The notes under the pieces: model-generated
Seen by the model: the letters and a program-made list of their open reading frames with translations, nothing else
Databases searched by the model: none
Told to the model about the DNA's origin: nothing
Shown here: positions 3,001 through 47,025 of the stretch, one piece after another
Numbering within the stretch: position 1 is the first letter of the stretch
How the letters are laid out: each line of letters opens with the position of its first letter
Assembly: GCA_000708835.1 (NCBI GenBank)
Contig: DF236958.1
Span: 62,001-126,000, forward strand
Origin: Klebsormidium nitens
Taxonomy: Eukaryota > Plantae > Klebsormidiophyceae
DNA length: 64,000 bases
Reading direction: 5' to 3'
Made by a program: the position numbers and the translations under genes

Positions 3001-3643
3001 CGGGACTGTCTGCACATCGGGGCTTCTTTGGCTGCAAGTGAGTTCCGATCGAGAACATCTTTTAGAAATGTTCCTGCTTTGCTTCCGTTGCAATCAACTT
3101 GCTCCAATATTAACAACACATCAATAAGATGTGCCTTAGACACCATGACTGTCTGGCCACTTCAGTCGCTAGACGCGTCAAGTTGACATCCGTTCCGGAG
3201 GTGGATGTCTTTTCATTTGTTGTTGGCGAATATTTCGACACCTCCTTTTGTGACCGAAACCTAGCCCGTTCGAATCCGAGACTCACAAATGCAGCCACAG
3301 GAATCTCGCGTCTGCACTCTAGCCCTCACTTGAGTTCATAGACCTTAGAACCCAAAAAGTGGCGAGATTTCAATGATGCACGCCGACACAGTTACTCGAA
3401 AAACAACTAGTGCATCAAACCTACAACGTTAGCCGAACGCCTCTTGCAGACCTTCTTCTCACGCTTTCTTTGTATTACTCGCTTGTGCTTCTTGAGAACT
3501 CGTAAGGTTCTCTATGTCGAGCTTACTATACCCGACTAATAAGAAAATAATAATAATTATAATCGGCTCCTTGCAGGCACTTTTCTCAAACGAACAAGAT
3601 TCTGCATGACGCGGGCCAGCTTCCCATCGATTGGCAACTCTGA
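1..3643 (+). CDS. UNG: Uracil-DNA glycosylase, family 1; 5' end outside window; 6 exons seen
   Basis: Exons <1-144, 684-904, 1293-1451, 2155-2321, 2954-3037 and 3577-3643 have GT-AG junctions and compatible phases. The spliced protein has the N-terminal [20 protein letters not shown] segment (like the RPA-binding region of eukaryotic UNG), catalytic VILGQ|[42 protein letters not shown] and the terminal PIDWQL*. Confidence 0.97.
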
Positions 3644-5350
3644 AGTAGGGATACACTATTCGAGGAAGGAATCTGTTGAGGTTGAATCGTTGTTGCACAA
3701 GCAGAGCTTGGGCATCCGCGAGTCTCTCACGCTCTGCACGACCGCTTGCTGTTTCGCTCAACAAATCCCAATGTTCCTTAAACGCACGCTTCTGTTCTAC
3801 CTAGATTGGCTAGAGGAGCGGTTTCTGACGATCAGCGGCTTGAACATAATGGCAAGCGTAGGATAATTTGCAATTGATCAAAACATCCCTGTGAGACTGA
3901 TCCTTGGCATCGCTTTGCGCTTTCCACTGCATCATACTCGTTGGCGGCTGAAGGCAAACCAGCTTCTTACGTGAACGGGACACTTGTGTGTGGTGAAGCA
4001 GAATTGCGCAAACATCTGGTGTGTGCGTGTCGAAAGGTGTATCGATCATGCGTTCTCCTTCCACCCTCGGGTTGAAATCACCCGGAAGATGGTCGAGCGG
4101 GCACATGTTTTATCTGCTCATCAATTTTGCATGGTTGGACCCTCATATAAATGACAACGTGGAGCATCAATGCACTGCGAACGTACATCAGTATTTATTA
4201 TTATTGACTGGTCAAAGATTGGATCTGCATGACCGTACCTGCATGAGCCTGAGTCTTGACATGTCGAAGAAATTCGCAACACCCTTTGTATGATGTTTAG
4301 CTCGCGTACGTGTGCCCATGTGATCAAATGTAGTGCATTGTCTGGCACAGCCTATAGTGCCCGGCCTGGCGGCTGGGTGACCACACAGTGGCCATAAAAT
4401 TTGAACACTAAACCTCGGCGCTATCACATGTGTGAGTTACGCACAAAGGCTCCGGCCTCCTGCATGTGTATACGACGGTACAACCCATTTACAAATGAAA
4501 AACGAGCATTCGGGCGCGTAACCACTGAATGCAAAGCGTACGAAAACAACGGTACGCAGTTATTCGTATACTACCTGACGCTGAGGTTCAATGATCGATC
4601 TGATCTCGATCTGAGTTTGTCATATATCTTCGACTCAATCTGCAGGATAAGTATGCGATAGGAAAGCATCCTACACTTAATTGCTTTGCATCAAGAGCGA
4701 GTTTAGTGTATAGAAATACAAATAGAGACAATCGTCGACTCTAGCCGACCACGGCTCCGAACCGACGTCAAATCAACTAAATCATATAGATATTCTTAGG
4801 TTAATTGAGAATGCTATCTTATCGTCGGCCGGATACCTGGAGCTAGCGCTGCCGCACCATGCGGGACCCTCTATAGACTTTCGCAAACTGCTCTAATTGA
4901 CACGAGTATGACTGCGCAAATGACAATTGTACTTGCCCTGCGAGATAGCATAAACATTGGTTTCTTGAAATATTGGAAGTTTGACGTTCACGCGAAAGCC
5001 ATGCGCTTTTTGAGTCGAACAAGCATACCACATCCTGGATCTGCGGAACTACGAATCAATCCTGTTTCAAATCAAAATGATTAGTAAAGGCAACACAAAC
5101 GTACATATCGGAGAGAGCCAGACGGGACGCAATGGCCAAACTGGTTATCCTCAACTGTGGTTCATCAAGTGGGCAATCCATCAACTTTATATCATACAAT
5201 GGCGCTCAATATCAACGAAGCGAAGCAGATATATTGCCTCTGAAATAGAGGTCTGAGAGGATAGCACGCTGACGGAAAGCGCTCCAGACACAAGGAAATA
5301 CACAGAGGAAGAAACTGCTTCTCGTGTTCAACCACAAGGTCGGGAAGCGC

Positions 5351-8300
5351 TCACCTTTCGTGCCCGGTCGAAGCGCCTGTCACCGGTTCGTTCCCCTGTG
5401 CTGAACCGTCGGCTTTTTCCGCGGTTCCCGGGGGCTCCGTTTCCGGGGGGCTTTTCCCCATTCCGCTTGCCGGAACGGGCGCTGGGGATTCATCGTACAG
5501 CAGCCCCTCGAGCGTCGCCGCCCAGGGGTTTGGAACCGGGTCGCGCGCGCGCGCTGACGCCAGCGATGACGCATTCATCGCCGGCATGTTAGCGGTGCGG
5601 AAGGGGATGCGCGCGTACGTGGGCGCGGACGTGTTGGCGTATCGGGTTTTGTTGGGAGCGTTTAGGTTAGGGAAGGAGGTTTGGGGTTTGGGCAGGGTTA
5701 GCGAGCCGTCGGCCATCGCGGAGCAGTTGAGGCGCGCGAAGCCGAATAGCTGATGCGCGCGGTCATAGGTTACGAGCAGGTTGTGGACGCTTATGCCTGC
5801 ATGGAGATCGAAGCCTCGAAGCTGATTTCTCGGTTGCCAGTAGAATCTCAGGGTTGCGAACGGAGTGCGAGTTGACCACGTACGTCTTTCCGAAAAAGAA
5901 GAGAGTCATTCTGACGTTCAGAAGAGGTTAAGAGGCCGCAATCAACCGACCGAAAGTGCTGCAGAGATACGAAGGTGACAGATAAAAGAACGGGAAGGGG
6001 TTCATCGTGCTGAAATTCTCCAATTGCGGATGCACCTGTCAGAGTGAAGGACGAAAGGTGTCACGTTTCTTACCCCCGATCGTTGCTCCGTGCTGCCCGC
6101 TGGAAAAGATGCCAAGACAATAGGCGCCGCCCAAGCTGGGGTGCTGCAAGAAACACAAAAAGAGAAAGAAGCTCGGAGTTCCAGCTTTGCTAGTCTTGAT
6201 TCGGGGGGGTAGTAGCGAACATCCTTAGGAACGTCACGATCCGGCACAGGAATCGTAACGAGGCACGCTGTCCGTGACTTCCAAGTGGAATCGCTCTTGA
6301 CAACGAGTCAGAAGACGCGAACCGCTGCAAAGTCCTTTACGAAACACGCGCAATCCAGCGTTCCGGTCTCTCCGATCCCTCGTGGCGGTGAGAAGCATCC
6401 CTTTCGTTTCGATTTTAAAAGTAAGTGGGCCTGTGTTATCTAGGCTGCGGATCCTTCTGATAAGTGGTGCGACGGATGAACGAAGCTCGACCGACAAGAC
6501 GGAACATCGAATAAAGTATAAAGAACACATCTCAATGAACGACACGATTTGGACCAGTATCGGAAGTTCTTGTTGCACCTTGAAGAGGTAGTTGTCCGGC
6601 GGAAGCTCCACCACAACTCCATTTGCGAAGACGAAGCCCATGGTGGGAAAGGGCGAGGAGGGGCCTATCAAACTCCTGCTCGGAAAAGCGAACGGATTAA
6701 AAACGATTGCATCGCTTTTTCTTGTTTATGTCTGTTCCTTCAAGCACTTGACTACTGCTAAGCGCTCTCTCTCCCGGGGATTGCAATGCACGAATTGTGT
6801 TCAAAATAGAGAAGTCGGACAGGGTTTTGCAGAATGTACGAAGAGACAAAGCAAACCCAAAGCCAAAGGATTCAAGCAACTGCGCATCTCATCAGAACAG
6901 ATTGCGGTATTCAATTGAGACCCGAACTGTCTAGACGCAGGCTGTGTAACGCGACTTACGTCACTTTTCCCCAGCACGCAGCTGACAGGCTCCGCTTCGG
7001 CACCGGCACGAGCGAAAGTGGAATGGCTTGAAGGAGCTGCGGAAAGCGGAATTTTTGATGTTCAGTTATTTAGACTGGTTCAGAAGAGTTCAGGACTCCA
7101 GGTCCGCTCCATCTGAGAACTTGAACGAAAGCAAAGCCAAAGCAGCTGGTAGGCAAAGGCGAGCAAATTCCTGGGAAAAGTCAGAGAAGACCATTTGGGA
7201 GCAGCGATCGGAGTTTTAAAGATTGGAATATAAGACTAGTAGCGGGTTTGAGTCTCAACCAGGGGTTTGATTGACTAACCCGGGCCACCAGGGGGCCATA
7301 CAACACGGAGGGGAGGTAAGTGTACGTGGTTCCGCTGTCGACCATCGCGGTGACCGGAACGGACCCGGAATCCAAGCTGACGGCGGAACCGCCCACCTGG
7401 AGTCCGTAGACGTCCGCAAAGTACATCGATTCCATACTGCAGAATCAACCATTCACGTCGTACGTCAGCGGTCTGCAATGACGTCATCCTATGCGGAAAA
7501 GGGAATTTGAAGGAGACAGAGCAGTGTCTGCAGTGGCAACGATCTGCTGGAATGTTCGGCTGAGAAAGTTCAAATGGCGACTGATCGCTCTTCCAGGCAC
7601 TCATCTCAAGAGTGAATCTTTACGTACGAGGAAGAAAGTTCGTGAAATAAATTAAGACGTCTTGTAAACAGAGACTCTCAGGAAGACAAACTCAGAGCGG
7701 ACTCTGAGGAGAGTCTGGGAAAGCACTTCGAGGCCTTGAGCTTTAGATAGTCTCGAAAAGCAGTTAAGTAATATAGGCACTATGGACATCCCCCCACGTC
7801 ACCCCACCCCTCAGACATTGACGAATACCGACCCCTTCACCATTGATTTCAAGGAAGATAATGGCAAGCCGAGACGATAATGAGGTAACCGCACTGGGAT
7901 GGGTAGGGTTACTTTGGTGGTTCGGGTGGGTTTGGGTGCGGAGCAGGTACCTATTTGGGTTAGGGTTTTTAGTGTTAGTCGGAGCTTATTACTATCTTGG
8001 CATATTAGTATCTTTCTTGAGAATGAACCGTTTACCGACCTTGTTTGCGGCAGCATCGGCACCCAAACGGTGCCCGGTAGGACGCCGACCGAGCCAAAAA
8101 CCATTGCGCCTCCGCCCTCGACGCCCCCGAAGCAGAGCGAAAACGCGTCCTCTACCGCGCGCTGCTGCGCCAACTGAGCGATTATAGAACCGGGTCCCCG
8201 CCCCAGACCGATGATACCGTCGGCCGCCTGAGTGTAGAGGAGACCCGTTTCTCGAGTCTCGCACCTGGAGGGAGGGGGAGAAGATTTGACTTCAAAACGA

Positions 8301-10681
8301 GAAAAATGAGTACCGGAACCTGACAAGTTTTGTATGTCTGAGTGCTCAATCAGGATGCTCACAAAACAGGATTCGCAGGAATCTAACATCTTTGGTACAC
8401 CTGAGGGCTCATTCTACCGCCAGAACTCAGCCAGTCCAGGTGTCAGTCACTGTCCGGCGATGTTTGACCTAGAATCTTCTATCGAAATCTCCTATTGCAG
8501 TCCGTCCTGTCTTTCAAGCTTTGAGCAGAATTCTTGACAGACTTGAACTTTTAAAGATATCAATACTGAAAGTACACTCTTACCCAAACATGATTTTCGA
8601 AGCGCCCGTAACGCCAGGCAACCAGAGAACGTCAATCGCGACCGTTCCCGATGTGCTGCTTCCCTCCGAGTAGTGCTGCTGATACAGGCAAGGGCTGTCG
8701 GGGGACGGACACGTGGCGGGCGTGGAACCCGCACACGTCGCGGCGGAGCAGAGCAAAAGTGAATACGTAGAAGATGCCCCGTGGTCATATGGAGGGCTCT
8801 GGAAAAGGAAAATGAAGGTTGAGTACCGTAGCTTATGATAGCGGAGAGAAATTGCAAACGCTGAAAAGCTTTCGTTTGCAGGGGCAGCTACTTATGAGCG
8901 GATACATTCGCAAGGCGCTTGGCACGACATTGTTGGTGACACGTGCTTTTGAGTGGTGAACATGCGTGTGGCGCGAGCGCGAGGTTTGTCGAACGTATGC
9001 AAAGTTTCAGGAGGGGCTTAGACCCGAATCGATAGCGTCGGAACACTTCGCGAGCGGCAAACATTATTGATTGGCGTGGGCTCCGTCAGATCTCCTGCCC
9101 GGTGCTCAGGCCTCCACGGATCGAAAGGGGGAGGAAAGGGAGTAAAGAGGAGCTTTGAATGTGAACAGGTGCAAGGACAAGGAGCAGGGAGCGAAATGGC
9201 CAGAGTCGCAGGCACTGGGAGCTTATGCGAGTCGGTGACCTTTCTCAAAGCTCGCTTTGTATATCCCAATGTGAACATCGAACTGAAGCTTTCAGCACGC
9301 GCACCTAAATGGACAGACTCCAGCCGCCGTCCGCACTTCTTTGCCTTCTTCTGTATCACCCACGGCAGCTTGGCGTCGAGGTATACAACAGAGTGTTTAT
9401 CAAATTGAACCAGAGTCGGGAGCACGATAAAGGAAAACGAATGGCGGAAAACCAATTTGTTCAGAAGGAAAGCGGAATTCAAAATTCAGTGTAGCCCACC
9501 TCGTGACCCCTCCCACAGCTGACGCACTCCTTCGCTGGTACGTACATGATCGCACTCCCAGTGTCTACAATCATTTGGAACCGCTGCGGGGGGGTGCCGA
9601 GTGCGATCTCCGCAAAGTAATAACCCAGAGGAATTGTCGACCCACCCAGGGCGATTTTGGACGAGCTGATCAAAGCGCGCCTTGCCGCGTCAGCTGCCAG
9701 AAGATGCTCATGGTCTAGGCTCGAGAAGGGGGATATCGTTCCAGGGGGGGAGGGACTGTGTACGGAAGTGGGGGGGGGTGGGCGCTCGGTTTTGGCCCGG
9801 TGTGTGAGGCGCACGATTGGAGAAGCTTCGGCTTCTTCTAGCGCCTTGTTATGCTCAAAGGGACTGACAGTTTGACTTGGATCACGATTTTCTTTTGATG
9901 CTGGCACCGCCGCTCTAGAAGAATCAGCACCACGGTTGTGAAAGTCTGAACCTTTCGTACTGAAGGCTCTCTCGATCGATCCGTCCTCTCCCTTCATGTT
10001 GCTCTCCTCATCTCCCAGAAGACCCTCATCGACCCTCTCCTCAACTGACGCTGTTTCAGAATCGGTGTCCAGCCGTTTCAGCTCCAGCTGACGGTCCAGC
10101 AACCTCCTTCTACTCCAGTCAAAGAACGAGAATGATGCGGATGCAATCCGCCCTGCATCGGTGTCGATTCTGACTGCAATTTGTCCGCCCCAGCGAAGAT
10201 CAATCAGTTCAGGAATCTCGTAGCTCAGGTCTGTGGGCTTATTCTGTAAATGTTTGACACCGCCATCCATGTAGATGTACCCATCGCTGGTATTCGCAAA
10301 GCAGTGTGTCAAATGAGCAGCAGATCCGGTGTCTTGTTGTTGAGAGGGGCTTGATGTCGAGGCGGCTGCAGCTTGCTGGTGGCTGGAATCTTGCAACACC
10401 TGACTGCTCTTGTTTGCTGACGTTTGCCTAAGAACAACCCCAGATGTGCGCAATGTCAGCCCAACGCTATAATCTCCCTGATCCATCGTTGACAACACTG
10501 AAGAACGACGAGCGATCTCGTTTGCAGCCTCTCTTGCTTCCCACTCAGCACCTACCGCTCCCCCACTTTCCCTGGCTTTTGCTTCGGAGTCTTCTCCCCC
10601 TTTTGAAAGCCCTGCCAATCCAAGCTTGACAGCTGGCGCCCCAACCACCGCCACTGGCAAGCAAACCACCAGGAGAAACAT
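5351..10681 (-). CDS. Secreted aspartic protease, pepsin family A1 (plant A1B/atypical type), about 822 aa, 8 exons
   Basis: Exons 10681-9500, 8798-8584, 8264-8040, 7436-7280, 7036-6960, 6675-6579, 6143-6074 and 5796-5351 join in frame. Features: signal-peptide-like MFLLVVCLPVAVVGA, YYFAEIALGTPPQRFQMIVDTGS (Asp 1), IMFGCETRETG..ADGIIGLG, AMVDSGTTYTYLP (Asp 2), LPPDNYLF, YCLGIF and VTYDRAHQLFGFARLNC. The stop overlaps a consensus donor (AG|GTGAG at 5354), so one more 3' exon is possible. Confidence 0.93.
7882..7987 (+). mobile_element. Short G-rich dispersed repeat (MITE-like family), copy in an aspartic protease intron
   Basis: Aligns without gaps to 28447-28552 at 82/106 identical positions (manual count). 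Confidence 0.65.
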
Positions 10682-11147
10682 CGCTTTGAACCGGGGATCT
10701 TGCCATGACGTCAGCCTTACGCCTCTGCACGTCTCCCTCTGTGAGCAGCCCGCAGAGGGACCCATTCTAGTTGTTTTGCCCCTGGCTGCGCATTGCCGAA
10801 AGCACCACTTGCTTCCCTTCTCAAAGATGTAGACAGTGTCGACCGTTCACTTAGAGGTCCGAGATGATAACACTTGGTGATTCTAGTCCTGTGAGCGCCC
10901 TGTTGTTGATCAGATCTATCACGCAGGCATCCAAAATGTCATCCACAGTGATTAGCCCTTGATTAGCGCATATTCTAATCCCGAAAGTCTCGTTCTTTTA
11001 GGATTGCACTGCAAAAGAGGTACAGTTCTGAGAAGAACGAATGCCCTGAACAACAATGCCGTTGATCATGAAGGGCCCAGCCCGACATGCTAATTCCTGG
11101 TGGTTAGCACGGCTTGTTCACACTTGCTGTAAGTCTTTAAATCTTCT

Positions 11148-34062: not shown

Positions 34063-37013
34063 GATTTGTCAAGGCGGCGCAGAAGGCGAGACAAGCAGTT
34101 CTTGACGTCAAATGGCTAATGATCTGGAGCAGCTCCAATATGGATGCTTGTATATGTCTGGTCACCCATTCACCCGAGAGAGGGTGAGTTCCCGGCATCC
34201 ACGAACAAAAAGCGGCACTTTTGCCAAGACTGGAAAACACGTTGAGACATGGGTTGGTTTTATTAGGCCCCACATCGGAGCGCCAGATGCATCAGCGGCT
34301 CTTAACGCATTTTATGGTCGTGGAACATTGCCAGACTGGCACACAATGCTCACCGCACGATGACAAAACATCGGCACGATCGTACGGTTTCAAATGCACA
34401 CCACCGTAATTAGGAAGGCTTACGGGGTGAAGTGCATTCCCCCATGACTCTACCGGTACCGTATCTTACAAAAGTTGGACTGAGCGTCCCAACGTTGACT
34501 TCGACGCCATTTATGTTGACAGAAGATTCGAATTCAGAGAAATGTGCGCTTTTAAAACAACCCCGATTAGGTTAGTCGATGACGTCATGTACAGTACAGG
34601 TACGCCACTCGATCGTGCAGAAATCTCATTGCGCTAAAAGTAGTATGAATTGCTTCTGGCTATGGACCGCGGCTTCAACGCCGTAGATTTTGTTTTCTTA
34701 GTTGCCACATGGCGGTCACAGCTGAGTCTCCGAGTTGTGATTCCATGAGCCCACGTCATGGTCATTATGATAGTCTGAAACGCGGCAACTAAATGTCTGA
34801 CAATTCGATGTCAGGTGACTCAGGTCCCCGCAAGAGACAAAAGGTCAACCGCATGGATGTTGACCTACCGTAGAGACATTCCCATTCGCACTGAAATAAT
34901 CCATTGCGAAATATCGAAATTAAGATGTGGGCATGGTGCGAAAACGCGAAGTGAAAGAAGATCCAAAACCAGCATCAAAAGGTGCAAAACAGGCCTAAAA
35001 CACAGTAAAATGGGCTCGGTGTGAAATAATAAAAACTACCCCATAAGCTGGTGCGAAATGCCAGAACTTTAGAAATTGATTATTCGCACCATGCTGGTGT
35101 GAATGACAATGTCTGTACGGTATTAAAAGCAATAAAGAAACGTTTTCTTTCTCGGGGTTTTGATTTTGATCAAAACCCCGTAGAGACCGCCCGCGTGAAA
35201 GGCCATGAAGCCGCGTAAATAGCCGAAGCTTCAAGCCATCCACTTGGGAATTACGGACGGTTCCCCACTTGCCCGTGACTTCGGGAACTCTTTCTCAAGT
35301 CGGCGGCAATGATCACCGGTATGGTACCATCTACGGGTACCGTACGGTATTCCGTTCCCCCAATCAGACGGTGGGGCTAGGTATTACGGTACCCCCACAC
35401 TTAAGTGGAAAGTGTCGACATCTGTTAAGACTGGCTGGGCGAAGGGGCGAGTGGCCCCGGTTCGGCTGGTTTTGGAACCTTACCTCATTTTTTGTCGACA
35501 TCAAAGTCACACCAAAAAAAGGGGGACCCGCAAGATGTGTCGACATCATTGCAAAAGAGGGTTTCGGAGGAATTAGGAGTGTTAGGAACAGTGCTTGAGC
35601 CCTTATATCCCCTCCAACCCCTCAGCCTAACCCCACCCTTCTTCGCCTGGGGAGCTTAGAGTTTTGCAGTCTACGAGCGTGGGAGCCCCTGGTAGGTATG
35701 CGGGTGGCGGTGCTGCGGTACGAACAGAAAGAGATCAAGGATTTTTGGCAACTGTTTTGGTGTATGGTACGGTAGGTATGTCTAACACCCCACTCCGGGT
35801 CGGAAGGCCGGCGGGTGTGCACTGAGCATTTCTGCGAGGTCCGAGTCGAATTTGGAACGTCAGTCTGCGTCTGTGCAATGTGCAAAGATGCCTTCTTGCG
35901 TCAGCAAAAGCACAAGGGGCCAAGGGGACCAAAGGCGCTGGTAAAGCGAGAGTCGAGCGCAATTGACATGCCAGTGGACTGGACAAATTCCTTTGAATTG
36001 GAGCTGATCTTCAAGGAGCTCTTCTCTTCGTTTGCTGTGGTGGCTTTCAACGACGTGAAACTCGATCATTAGGCTGGTCAAATAGTGCATTGGACTGCAA
36101 TCTGGCAGCATTGATCGTCTTCCCGCGAGGTGGCTACACTGAATTGAATCAGGTGAGCATTGATTTTCGAGCTCAGCGGGCATGCTCATAATCTATGTGG
36201 TTTGTCTGAAACCGGGCATCAGCCTTCATGGAGTTCTATTGCTCGCTGAGCCAACCTATTTTGAAAACCGGGTTTGCCAAAAGCTCGCTGAAACGCATGC
36301 CACTTGCACATATGGCATCGTTAATCAGGTTACATCTTGTCATATGAAAGGTCTTGTCAGTCAGCTGTAAGACTGCACTGCAGAAGCGACAGCAGGGCAT
36401 TGTCCAGTCTCTTTCTTAGGTGGTCATCTTGTCTTCCGCCTTCATTACGAACGGTCTGATTGTGCTGCAGGGAGGGCTATTCTGTCTTCATGCTGGCCTG
36501 ATGAAGTGATGTCTCAGAAACAAAGGCTTGCTTGACATTCTGCAACGGCAACAACCCGGGCGGCAACTCGCGTCAGGAAAAGTCTATGTTTTATTTCATA
36601 AACATCATTTAGCTCAATGAAACCGTCCAAATCAGGTCCGCCGATGGCAGGAGTGCTTCTATGTTGTCCCTTTTGACTGCAACGACTCCGTGTCTGCTAC
36701 TAGAATAGGGCAGGCAGGGACTTGTCAAACGAAGCCTGCTTGAGAGTACTTGCAGACTTAAGCCTTGGAAGCGCATCAGATAGAGACAACGTCGTTGATG
36801 AAATTCCCCTGTCTCAAGAGGTTGTTTCAAAACCTTGCTTCTTGGAGCCGTCTAACTTCACATTATACCGGATCAACAACATACGCCGCCACAACAAGCA
36901 GCTGTGGAGACACGCTCCTTCTTGATTGCAATTCAACTCCCAATGCTGACACATGTCCTGACACCCCCCTTGCAGGACGATTCCGCTTGGAGCAGATTCC
37001 AGTCCCAAAACCT

Positions 37014-39617
37014 ATGGCTTCCCTCTGGGTGTTCAAGTTCTTCCTGCTCCTCTTCCTTGTGAGCGATTCGCACTGCCTCACCATAGAGGAGATCGAGACC
37101 TTGATCAAGGGACCGCTTGCTCCTCAGCAAAGCCTCAAGCTGCCTGGCCGCGGACTGGGCGGTACAATCCCCCCCGCTCTGGGGTCGTTTACCAATCTCA
37201 CCGCAATCGACCTGTCGGACAACAATCTGACGGGCCCAATTCCCCCCGAATTGAGCAGGCTTCGTCGCCTGGTGACACTCAAGCTCGCCGGGAACCGCTT
37301 GACGGGAGGGATCCCCGCAGAGTTTGGCAACTTCTCCAATAATCTCGCAAACCTCTTCTTGTCGGGGAACCGTTTGTCCGGGCCTTTGCCTCCAAGCATC
37401 GGCATTATCCCCCGGCTCGTGACGCTGGATGTTTCCCGCAATCAGCTGTCAGGGTCTATCCCGCCAACGATTGGCAACCTGTCCTATCTCGGGACGCTCC
37501 AGCTTGCCGACAACCAACTTTCCGGCAGGATTCCAGGCGAGATTGGCGACCTGGGGGGTGCGGTCAGCCTGTTCCCGACTTCAGGACTGAATCTGTCCTA
37601 CAACAACCTCTCCGGTCCAATTCCAGCTAGTTTGGGTCGGCTCACCGGGCTTTATTATCTCGACCTGTCCTCCAACGGTCTGTCAGGAGCCTTCCCGTTC
37701 TCGTTTGCCAAGTTTCTCAAGCTCGAGTTTCTGGACCTCTCGTACAACTCGTTATCTGGGCCGTGTCCTACTTTTGGCAAGCTGCCGCTTCTTGGTGCAA
37801 TCCTGCTCAGGAATAACGGCTTTTCGGGGCCCATCTCCAGCAGCATTGGCCAGTGCCCCATTCTTTACGGCCTGGATCTCAGGAACAATAGCTTCTCAGG
37901 GCCGATCCCCCCTGCCCTGGGCTCGTTCCGGATCATGGACACTTTGCTCCTGAGTGACAACCAGCTCACGGGTACGGTCCCAGTGGAGCTTGCAGGGTTA
38001 ACCCGGTTAACGTTCCTGGGTATTGCTGGCAATAACCTGACTGGGCCCATGCCTGCGGAGCTCGCGGGGCTTTTGAAGCTGACGTTGCTTGACGTGTCAC
38101 GAAACCCGGCATCGCTGGGGAACCTCCCATCGAACTTTAGCCGGCTGCACAACCTGACGCAGCTCAGTCTGCCGGGCCCTGACATCCCCGCGTGGCTCCG
38201 GTCCTCCAGAAGTCTCCGTGCCATTAGCTTTGCCGGCGCGCAGGGGGGCTGTCCTGTAAGGGGCCGCGAGTTGGATCTGTCGCTCCTCCCCCAAACCTGC
38301 AAGTATGTCTCACTGCGGGACCACTGCCCACGGCTGCGCGCGCTCAGGCTGTGGGACGCCTGCGACAGCGGCTGCGCGATCAATTTGATCGGAACGCGCG
38401 CGCGCCTCGCTCGGAGGACCCGGGAGGAGGTGTGCTTGGGGAGGGCCTCCGCCTTCCTGCAGGGCGACTCGCCGGACTTTCAAACGGGACGTGACGGCGA
38501 AATCTTCTTACAAAATCGCCAGGTCAACCTGTCCCTGTTCGACCCCGACTTTGTGGATCGTGTGGACTTGGGCCCCGACGGAGAAGCGTATACCGGCGTG
38601 AGCTTCGTTAAAGTGCAGCGGGGCAACCTGTGTGGCAATTCCGAGGCGCTCACTGTCATATTCATCCTTTACTCGGTCTTTGGGGCGGGCGCACTGCTGG
38701 GGTCTGCAGGCGCGTGGTTGCTGGCGCGCCGCCTACGGAAACAGGTCCCCAAACCCGAGCCTCGGCCTTCCACATGGGTGACATTCCTGAAGCGGCTGCC
38801 TTATGCAGAAAAAGTCGTCACTGTTGTATCGACGAAGGCGATTCCCACGGGGGTTTATTTATGGGGGGTCCTCGGGCTCGGCTTGACATATTACGACCTC
38901 GGGACGGATATCTTGGTGCTACGAGAGCTCTATGGGGCGTGGCCATTTTGGGTAGGCCTGGCCAGTCTCCTGGCTTCTGTGGTGGCAGCGGCGATCACGG
39001 CGACGATCGTGCTCCTGCACAAGGGGCTCCCTTCGGGGCACGTCTCGTTCACCTTTGACGCGTTTCTCCCTCGCAGTCTGCCTCTGAAGGAGCGAGCCCC
39101 CCCACTCCCGCTCTCGGCAGGGCAGTCCCTAGCCATACTCGTACTTTGGCCTTTGGCCGTGCCTTTGGTGCTGCTTTTGGACCTTCTGGGAGTTTTGGAT
39201 CGGGTTGGGGTGCACATAAAGGCACAAGGTACGGTCTTCCTCATGGAGCCGTGGCTTGACGCGCGCGGCTTTCTCGATACTTTGCTGCGGAGCGTCCCTT
39301 CCGTGATTCTCCAGACGGTCGTTTATTGGCTGGGCAGTTCAAGGTCGACGAGGCTTTACTTCGATGAGGTCCTCTTCATCCAGTCTAGCACCGGTGCTCT
39401 GAGTACCATGCTTTACCAGATTATTGATGCTTCCTGGGAAGCCTTTTATTCTCCCAGGCCTGAGTATCCTTGGAACCCCGTGGCAAGGCGCTTGAGTAAC
39501 GTAAAAAGGTCTTGGAAGGTAGACAAAAATGAGGATGTTGGTGAGGAAGATTCTCTGAAGCTGGGGGTTTCCTCGAATGCGGGCTTCGTCGATAAGAGTG
39601 GCGACCTTTACCCTTGA
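37014..39617 (+). CDS. Intronless LRR receptor-like protein, 867 aa: signal peptide, about 13 canonical plus about 3 degenerate plant-type LRRs, Cys-rich spacer, TM anchor and XK-related-like multipass domain; no kinase
   Basis: The ORF 36765-39617 probably starts at ATG 37014 (MASLWVFKFFLLLFLVSDSHC). It has 24-aa repeats LxxLxxLDLSxNxLSGxIP, an NLCGN cap, and a TM followed by RRLRK. Next come TYYDLGTDILVL, several more hydrophobic helices and FLDTLLRSVPSVILQTVVY. Confidence 0.9.
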   Translation: MASLWVFKFFLLLFLVSDSHCLTIEEIETLIKGPLAPQQSLKLPGRGLGGTIPPALGSFTNLTAIDLSDNNLTGPIPPELSRLRRLVTLKLAGNRLTGGIPAEFGNFSNNLANLFLSGNRLSGPLPPSIGIIPRLVTLDVSRNQLSGSIPPTIGNLSYLGTLQLADNQLSGRIPGEIGDLGGAVSLFPTSGLNLSYNNLSGPIPASLGRLTGLYYLDLSSNGLSGAFPFSFAKFLKLEFLDLSYNSLSGPCPTFGKLPLLGAILLRNNGFSGPISSSIGQCPILYGLDLRNNSFSGPIPPALGSFRIMDTLLLSDNQLTGTVPVELAGLTRLTFLGIAGNNLTGPMPAELAGLLKLTLLDVSRNPASLGNLPSNFSRLHNLTQLSLPGPDIPAWLRSSRSLRAISFAGAQGGCPVRGRELDLSLLPQTCKYVSLRDHCPRLRALRLWDACDSGCAINLIGTRARLARRTREEVCLGRASAFLQGDSPDFQTGRDGEIFLQNRQVNLSLFDPDFVDRVDLGPDGEAYTGVSFVKVQRGNLCGNSEALTVIFILYSVFGAGALLGSAGAWLLARRLRKQVPKPEPRPSTWVTFLKRLPYAEKVVTVVSTKAIPTGVYLWGVLGLGLTYYDLGTDILVLRELYGAWPFWVGLASLLASVVAAAITATIVLLHKGLPSGHVSFTFDAFLPRSLPLKERAPPLPLSAGQSLAILVLWPLAVPLVLLLDLLGVLDRVGVHIKAQGTVFLMEPWLDARGFLDTLLRSVPSVILQTVVYWLGSSRSTRLYFDEVLFIQSSTGALSTMLYQIIDASWEAFYSPRPEYPWNPVARRLSNVKRSWKVDKNEDVGEEDSLKLGVSSNAGFVDKSGDLYP

Positions 39618-40826
39618 GATGTTCTCCTCGATGATCGATTCCCTCTTGTTGCGTGTAGAAGTTGGGAAATCAATCATCATTAAACGGTCCGGTAGATTGC
39701 ATTCGGTAGATCGTCATCTTGCACTTTACGCATTCGGTTTATGCATGTACGAAATGTGCCTAGGTCGAACTCCACATGATGAGTGCCGTAGTCTCGCCAA
39801 ACTCTGCAGGAAGATCATGATTTGAGAGCGACCGCAGGGCCTACCGTGTATCCGATAACACATAAAGGTTCTTAAAGAAAAACTTCTTATGGGGGAGGCG
39901 GGTTGAGGATCCCCAAGACCAAGCTAAAAACAAACAATATTGATATACAAAACAGTGTGTTGGCCAAGCCAACTCAATGTCAGAATTGAGTGCCCTCAAA
40001 TGTCAATGATACGACCAGAAGCAGCAGCCGTGACAAGATCTCCGCGGCCAATGAAACCTGACATCACTAGAGGCCTCGCTCCTATTGGGGCGCCGAGACC
40101 GTGCCCTGGGGCGCCCGTGCGGGGGCCGCATCGCGGCTATGGATAGCGACCGCGTCGCACAGACCTGCCGCCCGCGCTAGTCCCGTTAATAGCGGGCCCG
40201 CCGTACGTGGGCGGGTCGGGCGCGGCCGCGCCAATCCAGGGCCGCGGCGCCCGTGTCAATCTGCATTGTATGCAGAATTGCAGCGAGTCCGACTCTACAT
40301 TACCATGTGGATAACGGCACTGATAAGTGGAAATTCCTACTGCAATTGCTTGCAAGCTTACCATAGAAAACAAGACACGACACGACGAGCTGCATAGACG
40401 GCAGCTACTGGTACTCACTGAGCACTGGCGGATTGGCAATAACTTGCTCATGCATGCTCATGTCATGGACGTGTTACATAAGCTTCATCCAAAATCTGCA
40501 TCGACTTTGGAAATACATCCTATTGCAAGCAGCTAGCAAGTAACTTCACAATTATAAGTGCAGAGATTGCGCATACCAGTTCATATTGCAACCGATCAAG
40601 CGGCAGACTTGTCTTGGGGATCTGGTCATAGAGTACAACACCTGGCAACATTCTGCACGGGGTGCTCTTTGTCAAGCACAGTACGTTCCAGTCCTTTGGC
40701 ACCTGCCGTAGATATCGCGGCAAGGATACGTTTTGTCAAGACTGAGGGGCCGACACTGTCCCTCAGCGCGTCAATGCCACAGTGTTTTGCTCTTATTCAA
40801 TCATTGGGGTTTGACTGCAGGGGGTC

Positions 40827-43800
40827 ATGGCGAAAGGAAGAGACGTCACTGAGGACTATGACGTCCCTGAAGGCCACACAATTGTGGAGATTCTGAACTA
40901 CCAACCTGACGCAAGCTACCGGGGCAAGTTTGACATCAAGCACCTGGTGAGCGTTTTGTTCTTGCAACCTTTGGTTTTGCAGCATGCCAGGGGGCTAATT
41001 CTTTAGTCATGTGTGGGCGACCCTTGCCGAGATTAAAGACCTTCTTTCAACATTCTTTCTTCAATTCACAGATGGAGATTGTTCCTGTTTATACTTGCGT
41101 CTCCTGGATTCAGGGTACTAATGAAGATTGAACGTAATGTCGTTGATGTTTCGTAGATTTGCTTTTTGTCGAATCGTGAATTTTGATCTGCCACAGGTCT
41201 TAATCAGAATTACGGTTTTCGTACCTAAACGACTCTATCAGGCAGCTGCTGGGCTGGCAGGCTCTTGTCAAAACCAGGCCCTGTCCTAGAGTCAACCTTC
41301 ATTCATAACCCAGGTCAATCCAAGAATGACCCTCAAGTCTGCCAACCGTACTGAAGCATCCGACAGCTGTCAGAATCGCGCCTCCCTAGATCTATCCCAC
41401 AGACAACCCCGCTTAGAGAAAGAATTGTTCCAACTCCAACAGACTCCCAACAAGTACCTGCATGTTTCTTCCTTAGTGAGAACCCCGCAACTAATGCTGC
41501 ATTCTCACTTGCAGGTAATCTGGACGTTTGGAGACTATACGGTGCACATCACAAACGCAGGCATCCCGATCCACCATCTTCTCAGTCCCATCATTGGGCT
41601 CAGTGCTGAGGATGCGCGGAAGCGAGCCCCCCGGGTGAAGGCACATATGGAAGCCAACAAGCAGCGCGCCAACGACACCACCATCAAGTACCAGGAGACC
41701 GGGGGCCAGTGAGTGTAATATCCTTTGTTAAGTTTCCTTTATCTTTTTGCTACCTTCGTTTTCCTACTATAGCAAACGAAGTTCCTCAGGTGCTGCACTT
41801 CGGAGTCCCGCATGCGCCACTTTTAATCCGAGTCGTTCTCGAACTTCACCAAAATATGGACACTGTAGTGCCATGTGGAGCAAAGGGCTGCCACCTGCCT
41901 CCCGGCGCCAGCTGTCACTTGCCTGACCTTCAAATCTGTGGAGTCGCGAGAATCTGGAAGTTTTCCAAGCGGCGTGCAGCGCATGCAGTCTGAATGTCTC
42001 GTCAAAAGGTAAACCGTCCTTGTGCAGGGACACGCTTGCGGTGAATGCGATTGGTGTCGACTACATCCTGCACGACTACATTTGTCCACAGATCCCGAGG
42101 GAGCGGCGCGAGAAGTTTGCACGGCGTTACGCAGCCATGCTGCACAATATCCTGAAGCGGCTCGAGGTAAGTCTCTGCGACCGCCAAAGTCGAGAGCTCT
42201 TTCGTGATACCTGTCCCTGTCGTACGAAGCATGCTTTGGGAACAAGTCGTCAAGCGGCTTAGATTAGAACTTGGACTTGCAGGTATTCTTTGAGAGCACA
42301 ATCTTTTGATACAGACCTGGTACCAGTCGCTCTCACGAAACAGCGTGAATCAGAGAACAGGCCAAATTCGACTCGCGACAGCTGTCTAGTTAGTGGGCAC
42401 TTTCAGTTCAAGCGTTCTTTACAGGGTTGCATGTCTCACTCCCCGATGTTTGCCCCTGCAATAAAGGAATCGGCTGCTTAGAATTGAAGAAGACATCGGC
42501 ATTTCTTAGGCATTTATTGACCTGCTCAACCTTTGGATTCAAAGAAAATAGTGGGCTGCTCTTCGGAAGAGGTAGCCCCCTTTAAATCTGCTTGTTACAA
42601 CAGAGTCCGCTTTCCTCGATCAGGATTCAGGCGTGAGGATGTGTCACACATTATCCAATTTGTGATTCTGGGAGATCTATCCAAGCCCGCGACTATCCCG
42701 CCAGATTGCCTGTCAAATACTCGACACCAAACCTGGAAGTCCATACCAGAAGCCGACCCCCGGAACAAGAAGCCTAAAACTCCTTAATTCATCTCCCGTA
42801 ACACAAATTTCAAGAAGCGGAGTTCCAGACAATCAGACTTGAAACTTCTCGTCTGTTCCAGATGCTTGCCGGGAGGGTCATCAGGCGGCTAAAGGCGGGC
42901 AGCCGCAACTACAACGACCTTCTTCTGCCCGGTCCTTTAGCCCAACCCGCCAAACCCGCGGGCCCAGCGCTGGTCATCTTGTCGCGCGTGCGCCCATCGG
43001 ACATGCTGCGCCTCCCCCGGCCCTTCCCGCCGCTGCTGAACGCCTCCCCCCAAAATCCGCTGCTGAGAATGCCCCCCGCGCCGAACCTGTTGCCGCCGCT
43101 GCCCCCCTCGGAATCGCCACGCGCGCCAAGTCCTCGGCCAAGACCGTCCCTGCTCGTCGCAACGTCGAACCCGCTGATTCCGCTGACCCTGAGTCCGCTG
43201 CTCGGGCGCCGGAATCCGGCGCAGCCGACTCCGAAGGCGCTTCCACTGAGCCGGAATCCACCTCGCCAGCCTCCGACGCAAGCTCTCCCAGCCCCCCCGA
43301 GCCAAAGCGGAGACGGCTGGCGGGACTTGGAGAGGTTAACGGGGCGTTTAGCGGGGTGGTTCATGGCGCGGTTAGCGCAGCGGAGGCCGACTCCGAAGCG
43401 TCTGAAGCGGGGACGGAGAGGAAGTGGGAAACTAAGCCGGAGGGGGGGAAGAAGAAAGAGGGAGCCAAGCTGAATCACTGCGGGTGCTCAAAAGTAGACG
43501 AAGCCGACTTTCGGGCGTATGAACAAGAGGAGAGCCGGGTGATGGCCCTCAGCCTGCGTCTTATGCAGAGCATAATCGAGCAGCAGGTGAGTGACGGTAA
43601 AAGGACACCACAGGAACGGGATGCTAAGCCAGCTGCGGTGACAGTTCGTCACAAATCTGTTTTGTGTCGAGTTTTGCGTCGGAAGCTTTCTTTTTACACG
43701 GACTTGGTTTCGCTTGTCGCTTTGATCGGTCATCGGATCTTTCATACACGGTCACGAGCCTCGCAAGCTTTACTTAGGAGATTCATCTGAGAAGAGTCGT

Positions 43801-45209
43801 GTCCCCCTCCGGCTTCCTAGAAGGCGGCGTATCGTTATGCTTGTCCGGAGGTTCAGTGCTGCCGAATCGAATGTGTGTAAAAGTGTCCTGTCTTGACCAA
43901 CGCGTTGGCCCCCCTTTGCTTCCGTTTTTCCAGCCGTGTGTTCAAAAACTCTATTTTTCTCGACAAGCGCGAGTATGCCAACCTCCTTGATTGGCCCCGA
44001 TTTTCCTTGAGCAGAGTGCTTGCCAATCTCCGCGAGACTGCGTCCTGGATTTTCACTCCTGCTCCGACCCGTTCGAGATGAGAGTCCTTACAAACATCTT
44101 TGTGTTCTCTGTTCTTGTAGCCGGCGCATGAGAGGCTGTCGTTCCTACAGGAGCTGTGCACTAGAAACGGGTACGGATGCAATCTGGTGCGAGTGGCTCC
44201 ACCGTAAGTCCTATTCCGCAAAGCTTTCCGTTGTTCTTGCCCGATGTGGTTGCCTCTTTCTGATGAAAGAAAACTTGACAGGATGCCTCGACCATTATCG
44301 TTGCATCTCTCAGATCCTTGTCAGATTGGGAAAGGTGACCTATGTCTTTTGCCTTGTTGACTCGCTTGATTGTTAGTTCGGAGTCTTATTTGCGATGAAG
44401 CAGCATATAAAAAAGGAGTTTCCTGTTTATTGAAGACTTGAGTTAAATCAGAAGCCCCCATTTGTGACCGTTTACCACTCCGGCTTGGAAAGCCTTCGGT
44501 GTGATATCGGTTCGCAAGCATAAAGACCAGAGCGAGGACCCTAACAGTGCCACGGCGTCAAAGCAGGTACTTCGTGAAAGTTGCTCTCTTTGCCGTAACC
44601 AGTCCTTTCAACTCGACGAGCTTTACCTTTAATGCTGCAACCACCTTTTCCATTGTATGTACACATCATCGACCAGAAGCCCACACCACTCCTCCTTTTT
44701 TCATTTGCTTTTAATTTGCTTTTGATTAAGTGATAATTGTTAAAATCATAATAATAATTAAAGTCTAAAATGTTATCTCCGCCCCAGGCCCCAAACGCCC
44801 CTCGAGCTGCTGCACGGTCCCCTCGCCCCGGTCATCGCCACCCTTGACTACGTCATCGAACACGTGGCTTCCGTCATCAAGGAAGCGCCCATCAAGTCCG
44901 CCATCGAGGCCGTGATGCAAGATGATACGGACGTCCGGAAGCTGTACAACTGGAAGGCGAACCTGTCCGCAAGCGGCGAGTACTGCTTCACGCACGACCC
45001 GAAGCGTCCGGGAAAGCCGCCCGTAGAGGACACGCCGTATGGAGCAGCTCCGGCGCAACTTGTGAGTGACACGTGTCGATATCTTCAGTTTCATGTTTCG
45101 GTCGGTTTTGAGGCTTTGGTTTCCGGTTTCAAAGAAATACAGCCGGCACGCAATCAGGAGGGGCAAGGCTCGGCGGTGTACAGACTGCGCCCCCGAGTGA
45201 GCGACTTGT
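40827..45209 (+). CDS. Spliced hypothetical gene with a Bro-N/antirepressor-like N-terminal segment and an NLS-like PKRRR; middle and 3' structure unresolved, possibly disabled
   Basis: Phase-compatible exons 40827-40946, 41515-41708 and 42028-42166 give ...VIWTFGDYTVHITNAGIPIHHLLSPIIGLSAEDARK...YQETGGQDTLAVNAIGVDYILHDYICPQIPRERREKFARRYAAMLHNILKRLE. Further coding-like exons lie at about 42862/42885-43586, 44788-45061 and 45148-45209. A frameshift or an alternative acceptor is needed near 42.9 kb, and a linking exon near 44 kb was not found. Confidence 0.55.
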
Positions 45210-45380
45210 GAATGATTTGACGGGATTTGGAGCAGTTTTGGGAGTTGTTGGCGATTTTAGCATCAAGAAACGCACCTGATCACATGTCGGTAGAGGACGC
45301 ACCGCACAGGCCGTAAGACCAGCTGCGCTCAACATTCAAGTGGTGTGCCTGCATTCCATGCCTCCAGACAATCAATTTCT

Positions 45381-45513
45381 GGGTTTGGGTTTTGGGTTTT
45401 GGGTTTTGGGTTTTGGGTTTTGGGTTTTGGGTTTTGGGTTTTGGGTTTGGGTTTGGGTTTGGGTTTGGGTTTGGGTTTGAGTTTGGATTCTGGGGCTGGG
45501 TCTGGGTTTGGGG
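45381..45513 (+). repeat. Telomere-like (GGGTTTT)8/(GGGTTT)7 tract, potential G-quadruplex
   Basis: Fifteen consecutive GGG runs at 45381-45478, then degenerate copies. There is no A, unlike TTTAGGG or TTTTAGGG. Confidence 0.95.
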
Positions 45514-47025
45514 TTGAGGCCTTGATCGCTGGGAGTCCGGCGGGCGACACGCCATCTTCAGTATGGGAAGCCCACATACGATGTGCTTATAATGACAGGC
45601 CAACCTTTCGGGGTCTTTAGCAAAGTTGCTTTTGATAACGCTTGAGCCTTCTCTTGTGCAACCTCACACGCAGCGACGGTTCAAATAACGAGGTTCGAAC
45701 GGGAAGTTAATCTTCCTTTGAGATGGACCGACGTCTGCGGCCGGTACCAAGGGCCGGAAACGCGCCCGCGAGGGACAACTTCAGACAAGCGCACCGTTCA
45801 ATCCGCAAACTTTCCTTCTAAGATGACCATGTCCAAGAGAAGCAATGCTTGAAACACTTATCCAACACAAAACTCCAACCCCCAAGTCTTCCAACATCAT
45901 GCCAGGCCCAAAGGAAATCACCAAATAAGATAAGCGCACTGGCACGACTACCATAGCAGGCCCTAGTCGAAAGAGTCTTTCATCGGCCCTGCTAGGCCTC
46001 TCTGAGAAGAAGTTTAAGGTGGGCGTAGGACGTGCACGTCCGTCCAAGATCGCACGGTGCTCGGAGCATCACCAAACCGACGTCCAAAATTGCGGGCGTC
46101 AAAGTTCTGACGCCGTCAGCACTTACGGGTGACGGTCGAAAATCCCAGCGCTCACTATAAGACCATCGGCATCCGCTGACGCATGCCGTTGCGCTTTCTC
46201 GCAGGCGGCACCGGAAGCGGTGCGAGCAGCTTATTCCCAGCGGCGCGCGCTCCCCCATCAGCTGGGGCTGTCTCGGCGTCCGACAGTGGAGCCTGAAATT
46301 GGCCCAGTCCGCGTGCTCCCTTCACTGGTGGTTAATCCACGGCGAGGTTAACGGTAACCCAGCCGCCCCCCTCAGCCCCGCGGACGACGAATTGGCGGCT
46401 CAGGTACGGTAACCTCTTTTAACAAGCAAGGTTGCCGGTCAGTGAACCGTCCCAGCTTTGGTGGGCTCTGGTTGTGCTCAATTGATTTAACGGCCAATTG
46501 TATAGATGAGAACCCGGGGGACGGGGGGGGAGTAGGGAGCTTAGGACAGGTATGGGTGCGGAGCGTTGTAATGTTTTAGGTTGGTGTTTCATAGTTAAGG
46601 GCCCTTGCCTTTTGTATCTTAACTTGAAATCATTCTGCTGATGATCCTTTCTAGAGTTCCCAGAATCTTTGGTGGGCTCTATGATGCCGGAACCTGATCG
46701 CTTAATGCAGGGTCAGCGTTAGCACTTGCTACGAGGGCTCCTCACTGTATTCTTGCGGCGGAGTGCCACGTGGCGCAATGAAATCGTGGACCTGTTGATC
46801 AGCTAGAAAACCGGCGGAATTGAACTTGACAGAAAATAAATCTGTGCTTAGCAGATCTTTAGTAACCGAGCCTCGTTGGAATGGTACTGCGGATCCGATG
46901 TCTGCTTGCAACGGTCTCGTGCCCTGCTGTCAAACAACTTCACCCTAGTCCCGGGCGTTAACGTCATGCTACCCGGATATTGTCTGATCCGAAGTCTTTG
47001 GGGCATGCAGGTGCGCCGCCTCGAG

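Follow-up and report, generated by a model that had tools for sequence, protein, structure and literature searches.

What does a plant-type receptor carry at its intracellular end when it has no kinase? The known signalling routes of leucine-rich repeat (LRR) receptors in the plant lineage lead through kinases, whether of the receptor itself or of a partner. The question is raised by a gene at 37014-39617 (+) in a 64,000-nucleotide stretch of the Klebsormidium nitens genome (assembly GCA_000708835.1, contig DF236958.1, positions 62,001 to 126,000; the whole stretch is referred to here as the window). The gene is intact and transcribed, has a single coding exon and encodes a type-I receptor-like protein. 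In the place of a kinase or a short tail, its intracellular end is, according to the structure models, a conserved, confidently folded five-helix membrane module of ~220 amino acids. The best overall explanation, which we regard as somewhat probable, is an LRR receptor with a module of the type found in the first repeat (ND) of XK-related proteins, for which we propose a lipid-related output.

The open reading frame (ORF) extends as a single unbroken frame from the ATG at 37014 to the stop at 39615-39617 (+) and comprises 867 codons plus stop, yielding a protein of 867 amino acids. Transcript contigs from four public runs, which belong to four studies, were placed on 34400-40300. The contigs of all four runs have in common a joint from 36149 to 36973, by which 823 nt with GT..AG borders are removed, and they therefore represent spliced transcripts. 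The resulting gene structure is as follows:

35679..36149 (+), exon 1 of the 5′ untranslated region (UTR), from transcript contigs of 4 runs; the start is approximate (contigs begin between 35679 and 35902)
36150..36972 (+), 5′ UTR intron of 823 nt, GT..AG, with the joint present in contigs from 4/4 runs
36973..40008 (+), exon 2, containing the end of the 5′ UTR, the entire coding region and the 3′ UTR; the 3′ end lies at ~39689-40008
37014..39617 (+), coding sequence, 867 amino acids plus stop, from the ORF listing, the translation and the in-frame upstream stop

Contig X9 rec 10 (3,337 nt) extends from ~35790 to 39949 and contig X13 rec 5 (3,104 nt) from ~35764 to 39689; both cross the joint, contain no second one and show 0 differences from the window, and contig X1 rec 4 likewise traverses exon 2 without a further joint. 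The coding region is therefore intronless. Because single contigs span all parts, one mRNA carries LRRs, anchor and C-terminal membrane domain together, as had been supposed in an earlier note on this DNA that was made from the sequence alone. An in-frame stop is located 51 nt upstream of the ATG at 37014 in the spliced mRNA, so that the protein begins with its signal peptide. The 5′ UTR of the spliced mRNA (35679-36149 plus 36973-37013) contains six upstream ATGs with short upstream ORFs of 3-64 codons, a feature that hints at translational control of the receptor.

The corresponding public protein of K. nitens at NCBI (P0001), an 893-residue entry named 'LRR receptor-like serine/threonine-protein kinase FLS2', is identical over its residues 44-893 to the protein encoded by the coding sequence, the last 297 residues of the ORF being matched at 100% identity. 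The N-terminus of the public model is assembled from exons near 34542 (34542-34601) and 36108 (36108-36152), and a small intron at ~37001-37064 (within 36973-37064) deletes the signal peptide. Among the contigs of the four runs none supports these 5′ exons or the small intron, and transcript depth over 34400-35581 is 0. The 5′ end of the public record, and hence its N-terminus, is wrong, and the ORF from the ATG at 37014 is the better model. The public name is wrong as well, because the protein has no kinase domain. With 867 open codons, transcript contigs and ~45 homologous clusters, the observation is far beyond chance.

The domain architecture of the receptor, set out below in order, is hardly open to doubt:

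37014..37076 (+), signal peptide, amino acids 1-21, MASLWVFKFFLLLFLVSDSHC, from hydropathy
37131..38228 (+), plant-type LRR ectodomain of ~14 repeats, with Pfam LRR_1, LRR_8, LRR_4 and LRR_14
38229..38645 (+), membrane-proximal region of the ectodomain, amino acids 406-544, with 7 cysteines, ending in NLCGN(P/S)EA
38646..38723 (+), anchor transmembrane (TM) helix, amino acids 545-570, with RRLRK next to it at amino acid 572, from hydropathy
38724..38837 (+), basic cytosolic linker, amino acids 571-608, with an insertion of ~20 residues relative to paralogs (alignment A3)
38838..39503 (+), membrane domain, probably XK-ND-like, amino acids 609-830, from AlphaFold 2 (AF2) models, structural matches and motif counts
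39504..39614 (+), acidic, disordered cytosolic tail, amino acids 831-867, unconserved, with a predicted local distance difference test (pLDDT) score < 50

Pfam matches to LRR_1 (E 4e-37), LRR_8, LRR_4 and LRR_14 are located between residues 60 and 408. Regular-expression counts gave strict matches to LxxLxLxxNxLxGxIP in 10 of the ~14 repeats and 11 N-glycosylation sequons within the ectodomain. A Pfam scan of the 867-residue protein at E <= 10 revealed no kinase (Pkinase, PK_Tyr_Ser-Thr) and no domain besides the LRRs; the last 300 residues had no Pfam match, and the juxtamembrane region (residues 406-544) had none in the Pfam or the Atlas search. The earlier note had described a plant-type LRR ectodomain with a single TM anchor and RRLRK, followed by neither a kinase nor a short tail, and this description holds, ~300 residues following the anchor.

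What these residues form was approached by structure prediction. An AF2 model of residues 603-867 (model 1), computed from a 19-sequence alignment, has a mean pLDDT of 82.1 and a predicted TM-score (pTM) of 0.76 and consists of five long helices and one short one (model residues 7-36, 41-68, 100-128, 143-171, 183-210 and 218-227), much as the earlier note had anticipated in proposing about five further hydrophobic helices that carry YYDLGTD. In protein numbering, these are helix 1 (residues 609-638, with D628 and D632), helix 2 (643-670), the helices at 702-730 (with D723), 745-773 (with R751, D755 and R759-S-V-P762-S) and 785-812, and the short helix at 820-829. The motifs YYDLGTD at residue 626 and FLDTLLRSVPS at residue 753 both lie on hydrophobic helices beyond the anchor, and small β-elements are predicted at model residues 75-79 and 131-140, within the loops that follow helices 2 and 3. 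A second model that includes the anchor helix (model 2) has a pLDDT of 79, with values of 96-97 in the anchor itself.

The XK-related protein XKR9 is built of two related repeats, ND and CD, each with four TM helices and one partly inserted helix (PMC8298096). An exhaustive structural search with VIA-align over 48,161 representative chains returned rXKR9 (7p16_A) at rank 1 with a score of 12.4, 155 residues of the model being aligned to positions 2-201 of the chain at an rmsd of 3.4. It was followed by hXKR4 (9boj_B; 10.8) at rank 2 and hXKR8 (8xej_X; 9.8; chain positions 7-183) at rank 3, and an unrelated chain was found at rank 4 with 7.8. The same three proteins occupy ranks 1-3 in two separate models, with a clear gap beneath them. 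The elements of the XK-fold ND, namely TM1, TM2, the inserted helix, a TM3 kinked at proline, and TM4, are all represented in the predicted structure. A CD is absent: beyond the TM4-like helix only a short helix and the disordered acidic tail follow, and the protein ends 55 residues past that helix, short of the two repeats and eight TM helices of the complete fold. The estimate in the earlier note that about half of the XK fold is present agrees with this, the module probably corresponding to the ND repeat. The anchor helix was also considered as a stand-in for a missing XK helix, which is unsupported, the XK match of model 2 beginning after the anchor.

Profile comparisons point to the same half. 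Three of the 48 family members scanned match the Pfam profile of the XK-related proteins, PF09815 (P0035, P0028 and a third). P0035 aligns to profile positions 3-174 of 337 (E 2.3e-4, 20.7 bits) and P0028 to positions 4-190 (E 3.7e-3, 16.7 bits); these two inspected matches begin at the start of the profile, cover its first half only and are both under the gathering score of 24.8 bits. In a search with ESM features, an XK-related cluster appeared at rank 2-3 with scores of 0.88-0.90 as the sole listed cluster with a Pfam family, a match that we take as a lead only. The nearest neighbours in the ESM Atlas include eukaryotic clusters of ~260-270 residues with the labels Mucoromycota and Foraminifera, which could be stand-alone single-repeat XK-like proteins outside algae.

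The membrane domain also carries counterparts, by spacing, of some residues that matter in XK proteins. Throughout the XK family, acidic residues buried on TM1 and TM3 of the ND form a conserved cluster, and the kink of TM3 lies at a conserved PQL motif (PMC8298096). Lipid scrambling by human Xkr8 requires D26 and D30 on α1, K/R134, E137 and E141 on α4, and R183 on α5, and the hydrophilic path is formed by α1, α2, α4 and α5, which are helices of the ND only (PMC8500837). Scrambling by Xkr8 is strongly reduced in the E141A mutant. In Xkr4, which is active as a monomer, D125, D129 and E313 (equivalent to D26, D30 and E141) line a membrane-thinning vestibule of the ND, and TM3 is broken at P316 (PMC12334663).

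Motif counts were made over 19 relatives, and equivalences to Xkr8 derive from spacing and alignment ranges rather than from residue-level superposition. D628 and D632 are model residues 26 and 30, and the structural alignment with hXKR8 begins at residue 7 in both chains; by spacing, the two residues match the acidic TM1 pair D26 and D30 of hXkr8. The TM3-like helix reads R751...D755...R759-S-V-P762-S763, with D755 at -7 and R759 at -3 from the proline, and this spacing equals the interval between E137 and E141 of Xkr8. The E-x-x-P-Q motif of TM3 is not present in this copy, in which the proline is kept, the glutamate is changed to arginine and the glutamine to serine; the replacement of ESAPQ by RSVPS recorded in the earlier note is thus correct. 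Among the relatives, the residues at these and neighbouring positions are distributed as follows:

position 628, D in 13/19
position 632, D in 14/19
position 723, D in 19/19
position 751, R in 18/19
position 755, E or D in 15/19
position 759, R in 10, E in 7 and Q in 2 of 19
position 762, P in 18/19
position 763, Q in 16/19
position 767, Q in 18/19

The pattern E-[STA]-x-P-Q occurs in 7/19 relatives and P-Q in 16/19, and the DxxxD pair is lost entirely in 5/19. From the counts at each position the consensus of the family is [E/R]-S-x-P-Q, in which the window copy is of the Arg type and among the few without glutamine at position 763. The TM3-like and TM4-like helices are connected by the loop LGSSR(A/S)TRIYID, which is better conserved in the family than any other and is predicted to face outward, like the TM3-4 loop of XKR9.

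The family itself was defined by an exhaustive phmmer search of 1.84 billion representatives with residues 571-867 as query, which yielded 44 clusters at E <= 1e-3 and 25 at E <= 1e-10. The domain is located at the C-terminal end in every match, and N-terminal LRRs were found in 8 of the 10 long members tested and in P0035. K. nitens itself has at least six paralogs of the family. Members include the named K. nitens paralogs GAQ84842, GAQ78274, GAQ78110, GAQ93027 and GAQ81339 and a K. subtile Trinity transcript in which LRRs and domain share one ORF; the remaining members, some of them environmental, are JGI, ENA or Logan contigs. The family is highly divergent, with a median terminal branch of ~1 change per site, and the window copy clusters with P0002, P0003 and P0005 at moderate support. 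Seventeen members extend far enough upstream for comparison, and in all 17 the domain is preceded, at a distance of 5-50 residues, by a hydrophobic helix with basic residues after it. Together with hydropathy, this supports the proposal of the earlier note that the extra anchor helix gives helix 1 of the domain the same N-in orientation, with a cytosolic N-terminus, as in XK proteins.

The NLCGNPEA motif and the anchor helix (together 38616-38723 of the window, residues 535-570) are conserved across very divergent members (alignment A3), which indicates that juxtamembrane motif, anchor helix, linker and domain are co-inherited as one unit. The anchor helix follows the pattern V-V-x-x-x-[YW]-x-x-F-x-x-L-L. 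To judge from its sequence conservation, this helix may belong functionally to the membrane module instead of merely anchoring it.

Two further observations concern individual members. P0023, an environmental protein of 290 residues, contains a fragment of the family (domain residues 64-173) and, after it, Sel1 repeats (residues 243-273; Pfam E 5e-18), which means either a further fusion partner or gene calls that were merged. On contig L001 from SRR11456919, which is 43.6 kb long and resembles Klebsormidium in its GC content of 0.53, a gene for a protein of 704 residues (3474-5588, +) lies directly upstream of P0052, a family member of 768 residues; its product has no match to Pfam or to the family hidden Markov model (HMM).

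Several results weigh against a relationship with XK proteins. The window protein does not match PF09815 even at E <= 10, and PDB chain sequences compared with two family profiles, or singly with the window domain, P0035 and P0028, gave no XK chain, all returns being chance matches at E > 0.3. Foldseek against the PDB found nothing significant, rXKR9 appearing at rank 23 with an E of 0.52, and the Atlas fold search found nothing. With a single XK repeat in place of two, a monomer cannot form the cavities C1 and C2 of the ND-CD interface, and this copy has arginine at the position of Xkr8 E141 and serine at that of Q145. In addition, word-indexed homology searches with the window domain, profile A1 and the P0035 domain retrieved family members only and no bridge to canonical XK proteins. 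Formal membership of PF09815 fails on three counts, namely the sub-threshold score, the single repeat and the altered TM3 motif. Of the comparisons suggested in the earlier note, the one with PF09815 accordingly came out divided, the window protein being unmatched and its three matching relatives including two that were inspected and lie under threshold; the one by AlphaFold and Foldseek provided a confident model without a significant Foldseek match, although rXKR9 had the highest TM-score and probability in the Foldseek list despite its rank.

These results could be read as convergence, that is, as a generic packing of four to five helices in a lineage-specific module such as a channel, a fragment of a transporter or a wall-sensing anchor. 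We consider this unlikely, for the first three of 48,161 chains are XK representatives in both models, all matches cover the same ND half as the two inspected Pfam alignments, and both motifs are found on corresponding helices with the spacing of the essential Xkr8 residues. Fold, profile, motifs and language-model features converge on one family among ~25,000. The ND structural matches, the sub-threshold PF09815 matches of relatives and the motif spacing support the XK/Xkr-like domain put forward in the earlier note, and the domain is probably a single-repeat relative of the ND of XK, Xkr and CED-8, with TM1, TM2, the inserted helix, TM3 and TM4. It is scarcely credible that the LRR part and the membrane domain were joined by an artefact of gene modelling or assembly, or that the gene is a decaying pseudogene. 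The wrong 5′ end of the public model does reveal imperfect annotation at the locus, but the frame is uninterrupted over its full length, individual contigs from the transcripts of independent studies run through all parts of the gene without a difference from the window, which excludes an artefactual fusion, and the same architecture recurs in paralogs and in the K. subtile transcript.

A related fold need not imply a related activity. XK and XKR2 bind VPS13A through a β-hairpin in a cytosolic loop of the ND (PMC9436381), and the domain might be XK-ND-like and yet no scramblase. It might instead offer a platform for docking or regulation, to which, for example, a bridge-like lipid-transfer protein of the VPS13 type could bind as VPS13A does to XK, or it might be an oligomerization module that joins LRR ectodomains to signalling partners. 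Small β-elements are predicted in the corresponding loops, after helices 2 and 3, this copy is without the equivalent of Glu141 of Xkr8 and without the glutamine of the PQ pair, and the disappearance of the DxxxD pair from 5/19 relatives is easier to square with a structural role. The equivalence of the β-elements to the XK hairpin is only putative, however, and that so divergent a family has retained the buried charged residues D723, R751 and E/D755 as well as P762-Q suggests a role beyond passive anchoring. On this balance we hold a platform without scrambling activity to be improbable.

For the receptor with an XK-ND-type module, lipid scrambling or membrane thinning is a possible output that we advance tentatively. 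The ND houses both the lipid path of Xkr8 and the thinning vestibule of Xkr4, and an ND on its own could therefore disturb the bilayer or scramble its lipids. Binding of a ligand to the LRR ectodomain, or clustering of the latter, would act through the anchor helix on the ND-like bundle; the loop LGSSR(A/S)TR, predicted to lie outside, would adjoin the juxtamembrane motif and offer a plausible coupling route between the two. The bundle would then thin the bilayer or scramble its lipids, a homo- or hetero-oligomer probably replacing the missing second repeat, and the output would be an altered lipid asymmetry of the membrane instead of phosphorylation. Where Xkr8 has E141, the arginine could form a pair with either D628 or D632 and tie helix 1 to helix 3. 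Judged by this substitution, R-type copies, including the one in the window, may be locked, regulatory or differently gated in comparison with E-type paralogs such as GAQ81339 and GAQ93027, which would be the better candidates for activity if the arginine locks the R-type copies.

For the Xkr scramblases of animals, the known activating signals come from within the cell: caspases, kinases or VPS13A. At its boldest, the proposal is a receptor class of a new kind: an LRR sensor outside the cell would directly gate a dimer of single-repeat XK-type modules that scrambles lipids or thins the membrane, and the form of XK that preceded its duplication would have been preserved or recreated; in this complete version we think it rather doubtful. 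If it is true, XK-type scramblases are not confined to animals, and streptophyte algae have tried a kinase-free, lipid-acting output for LRR receptors. An outside signal would then be turned into a response in a third way, by an extracellular ligand-binding domain wired straight to an XK-like membrane module, and the XK fold would be placed in the green lineage. A module of one repeat is also relevant to the question of which part of Xkr carries the scrambling path, for which the work on Xkr8 and Xkr4 points to the ND, and to the question whether a dimer of half-proteins gave rise to the fold with two repeats, and the family provides natural E-type and R-type variants at a key TM3 position.

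Comparison of the family HMM with the six-frame translation revealed no second copy of the family in the window; a tblastn match at 43782-43886 (-) with an E of 0.09 was taken as chance, since the HMM finds only the gene at 37014-39617. ORF fragments at 7814-8389 (-) and 9482-10765 (-) match eukaryotic aspartyl protease and TAXi_N (E 1e-9 to 7e-8), and by these matches they probably belong to a multi-exon gene for a pepsin-like protease unrelated to the receptor. These fragments were the only Pfam matches among the neighbouring long ORFs tested and provide no functional context for the receptor. A low-complexity tandem repeat at 45280-45620 encodes repeats of the PKPKTQN and GFGFWVL types on both strands. 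Proline-rich overlapping ORFs are present at 42862-43478, likewise on both strands; 42862-43470 (+), the sole stretch of the repeat and proline-rich region that was scanned, had no Pfam match.

The known systems closest to this receptor each share one part of it. In the volume-regulated anion channels LRRC8/SWELL1, the LRRs are cytosolic and C-terminal to a pannexin-like pore. One chain combines LRRs with a multi-pass membrane effector, as it does here; in the Klebsormidium protein, however, the LRRs are extracellular and N-terminal to the XK-like bundle, and the two have no known relation in sequence or fold. With LRR receptor-like kinases and receptor-like proteins, the protein shares the signal peptide, extracellular LRRs of the plant-specific 24-residue type (LxxLxLxxNxLSGxIP), one TM helix and a positive-inside stop-transfer sequence. 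Identity as an LRR receptor-like kinase or FLS2 orthologue was rejected for want of a kinase domain, and identity as a classical receptor-like protein because ~300 residues, including a confidently modelled five-helix membrane domain, follow the anchor in place of a short tail.

A second resemblance is to the complex of Xkr8 with Basigin or Neuroplastin, in which an XK-type bundle is combined with a type-I single-pass protein bearing an extracellular binding domain; here, by analogy, both would be united in one polypeptide (PMC8500837). Basigin differs in having immunoglobulin domains and in its chaperone role in delivery to the surface; it is not known to sense ligands. The possibility that the anchor packs as Basigin does was considered and rejected, because the Basigin helix contacts α9 of the CD, which is absent here, and the anchor lies outside the XK match of model 2.

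The closest likeness is to the XK-related proteins (XK, Xkr4, Xkr8, Xkr9 and CED-8), on whose ND (rXKR9, hXKR4 and hXKR8) the predicted fold of residues 609-830 superposes. As in these proteins, helix 1 starts from the cytosol and carries D-x-x-x-D (compare D26/D30 of Xkr8), and the TM3-like helix of the family has [E/D]-x-x-x-[E/R]-S-x-P-Q with the spacing of E137, E141 and the PQL kink of Xkr8. Unlike them, the module has a single repeat, no CD, no cavities between ND and CD and no C-terminal plug helix that is cleaved by caspases; its similarity is under the Pfam threshold, R-S-V-P-S stands here in place of E-S-A-P-Q, and an LRR ectodomain and an additional TM helix precede the domain in the same chain. 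The XK family has been called conserved over a range that extends from nematodes up to humans, and is thereby treated as animal (PMC12334663). In the full-text literature searched, to which most subscription journals did not belong, no paper was found that reports LRRs combined with an XK domain, or relatives of XK from algae or plants, in agreement with the view of the earlier note that the architecture is undescribed. What is new could therefore be the domain architecture, together with the first XK-like module of the green lineage in that literature, as a variation on known kinds of protein, and, if the function holds, it could constitute a new class of receptor.

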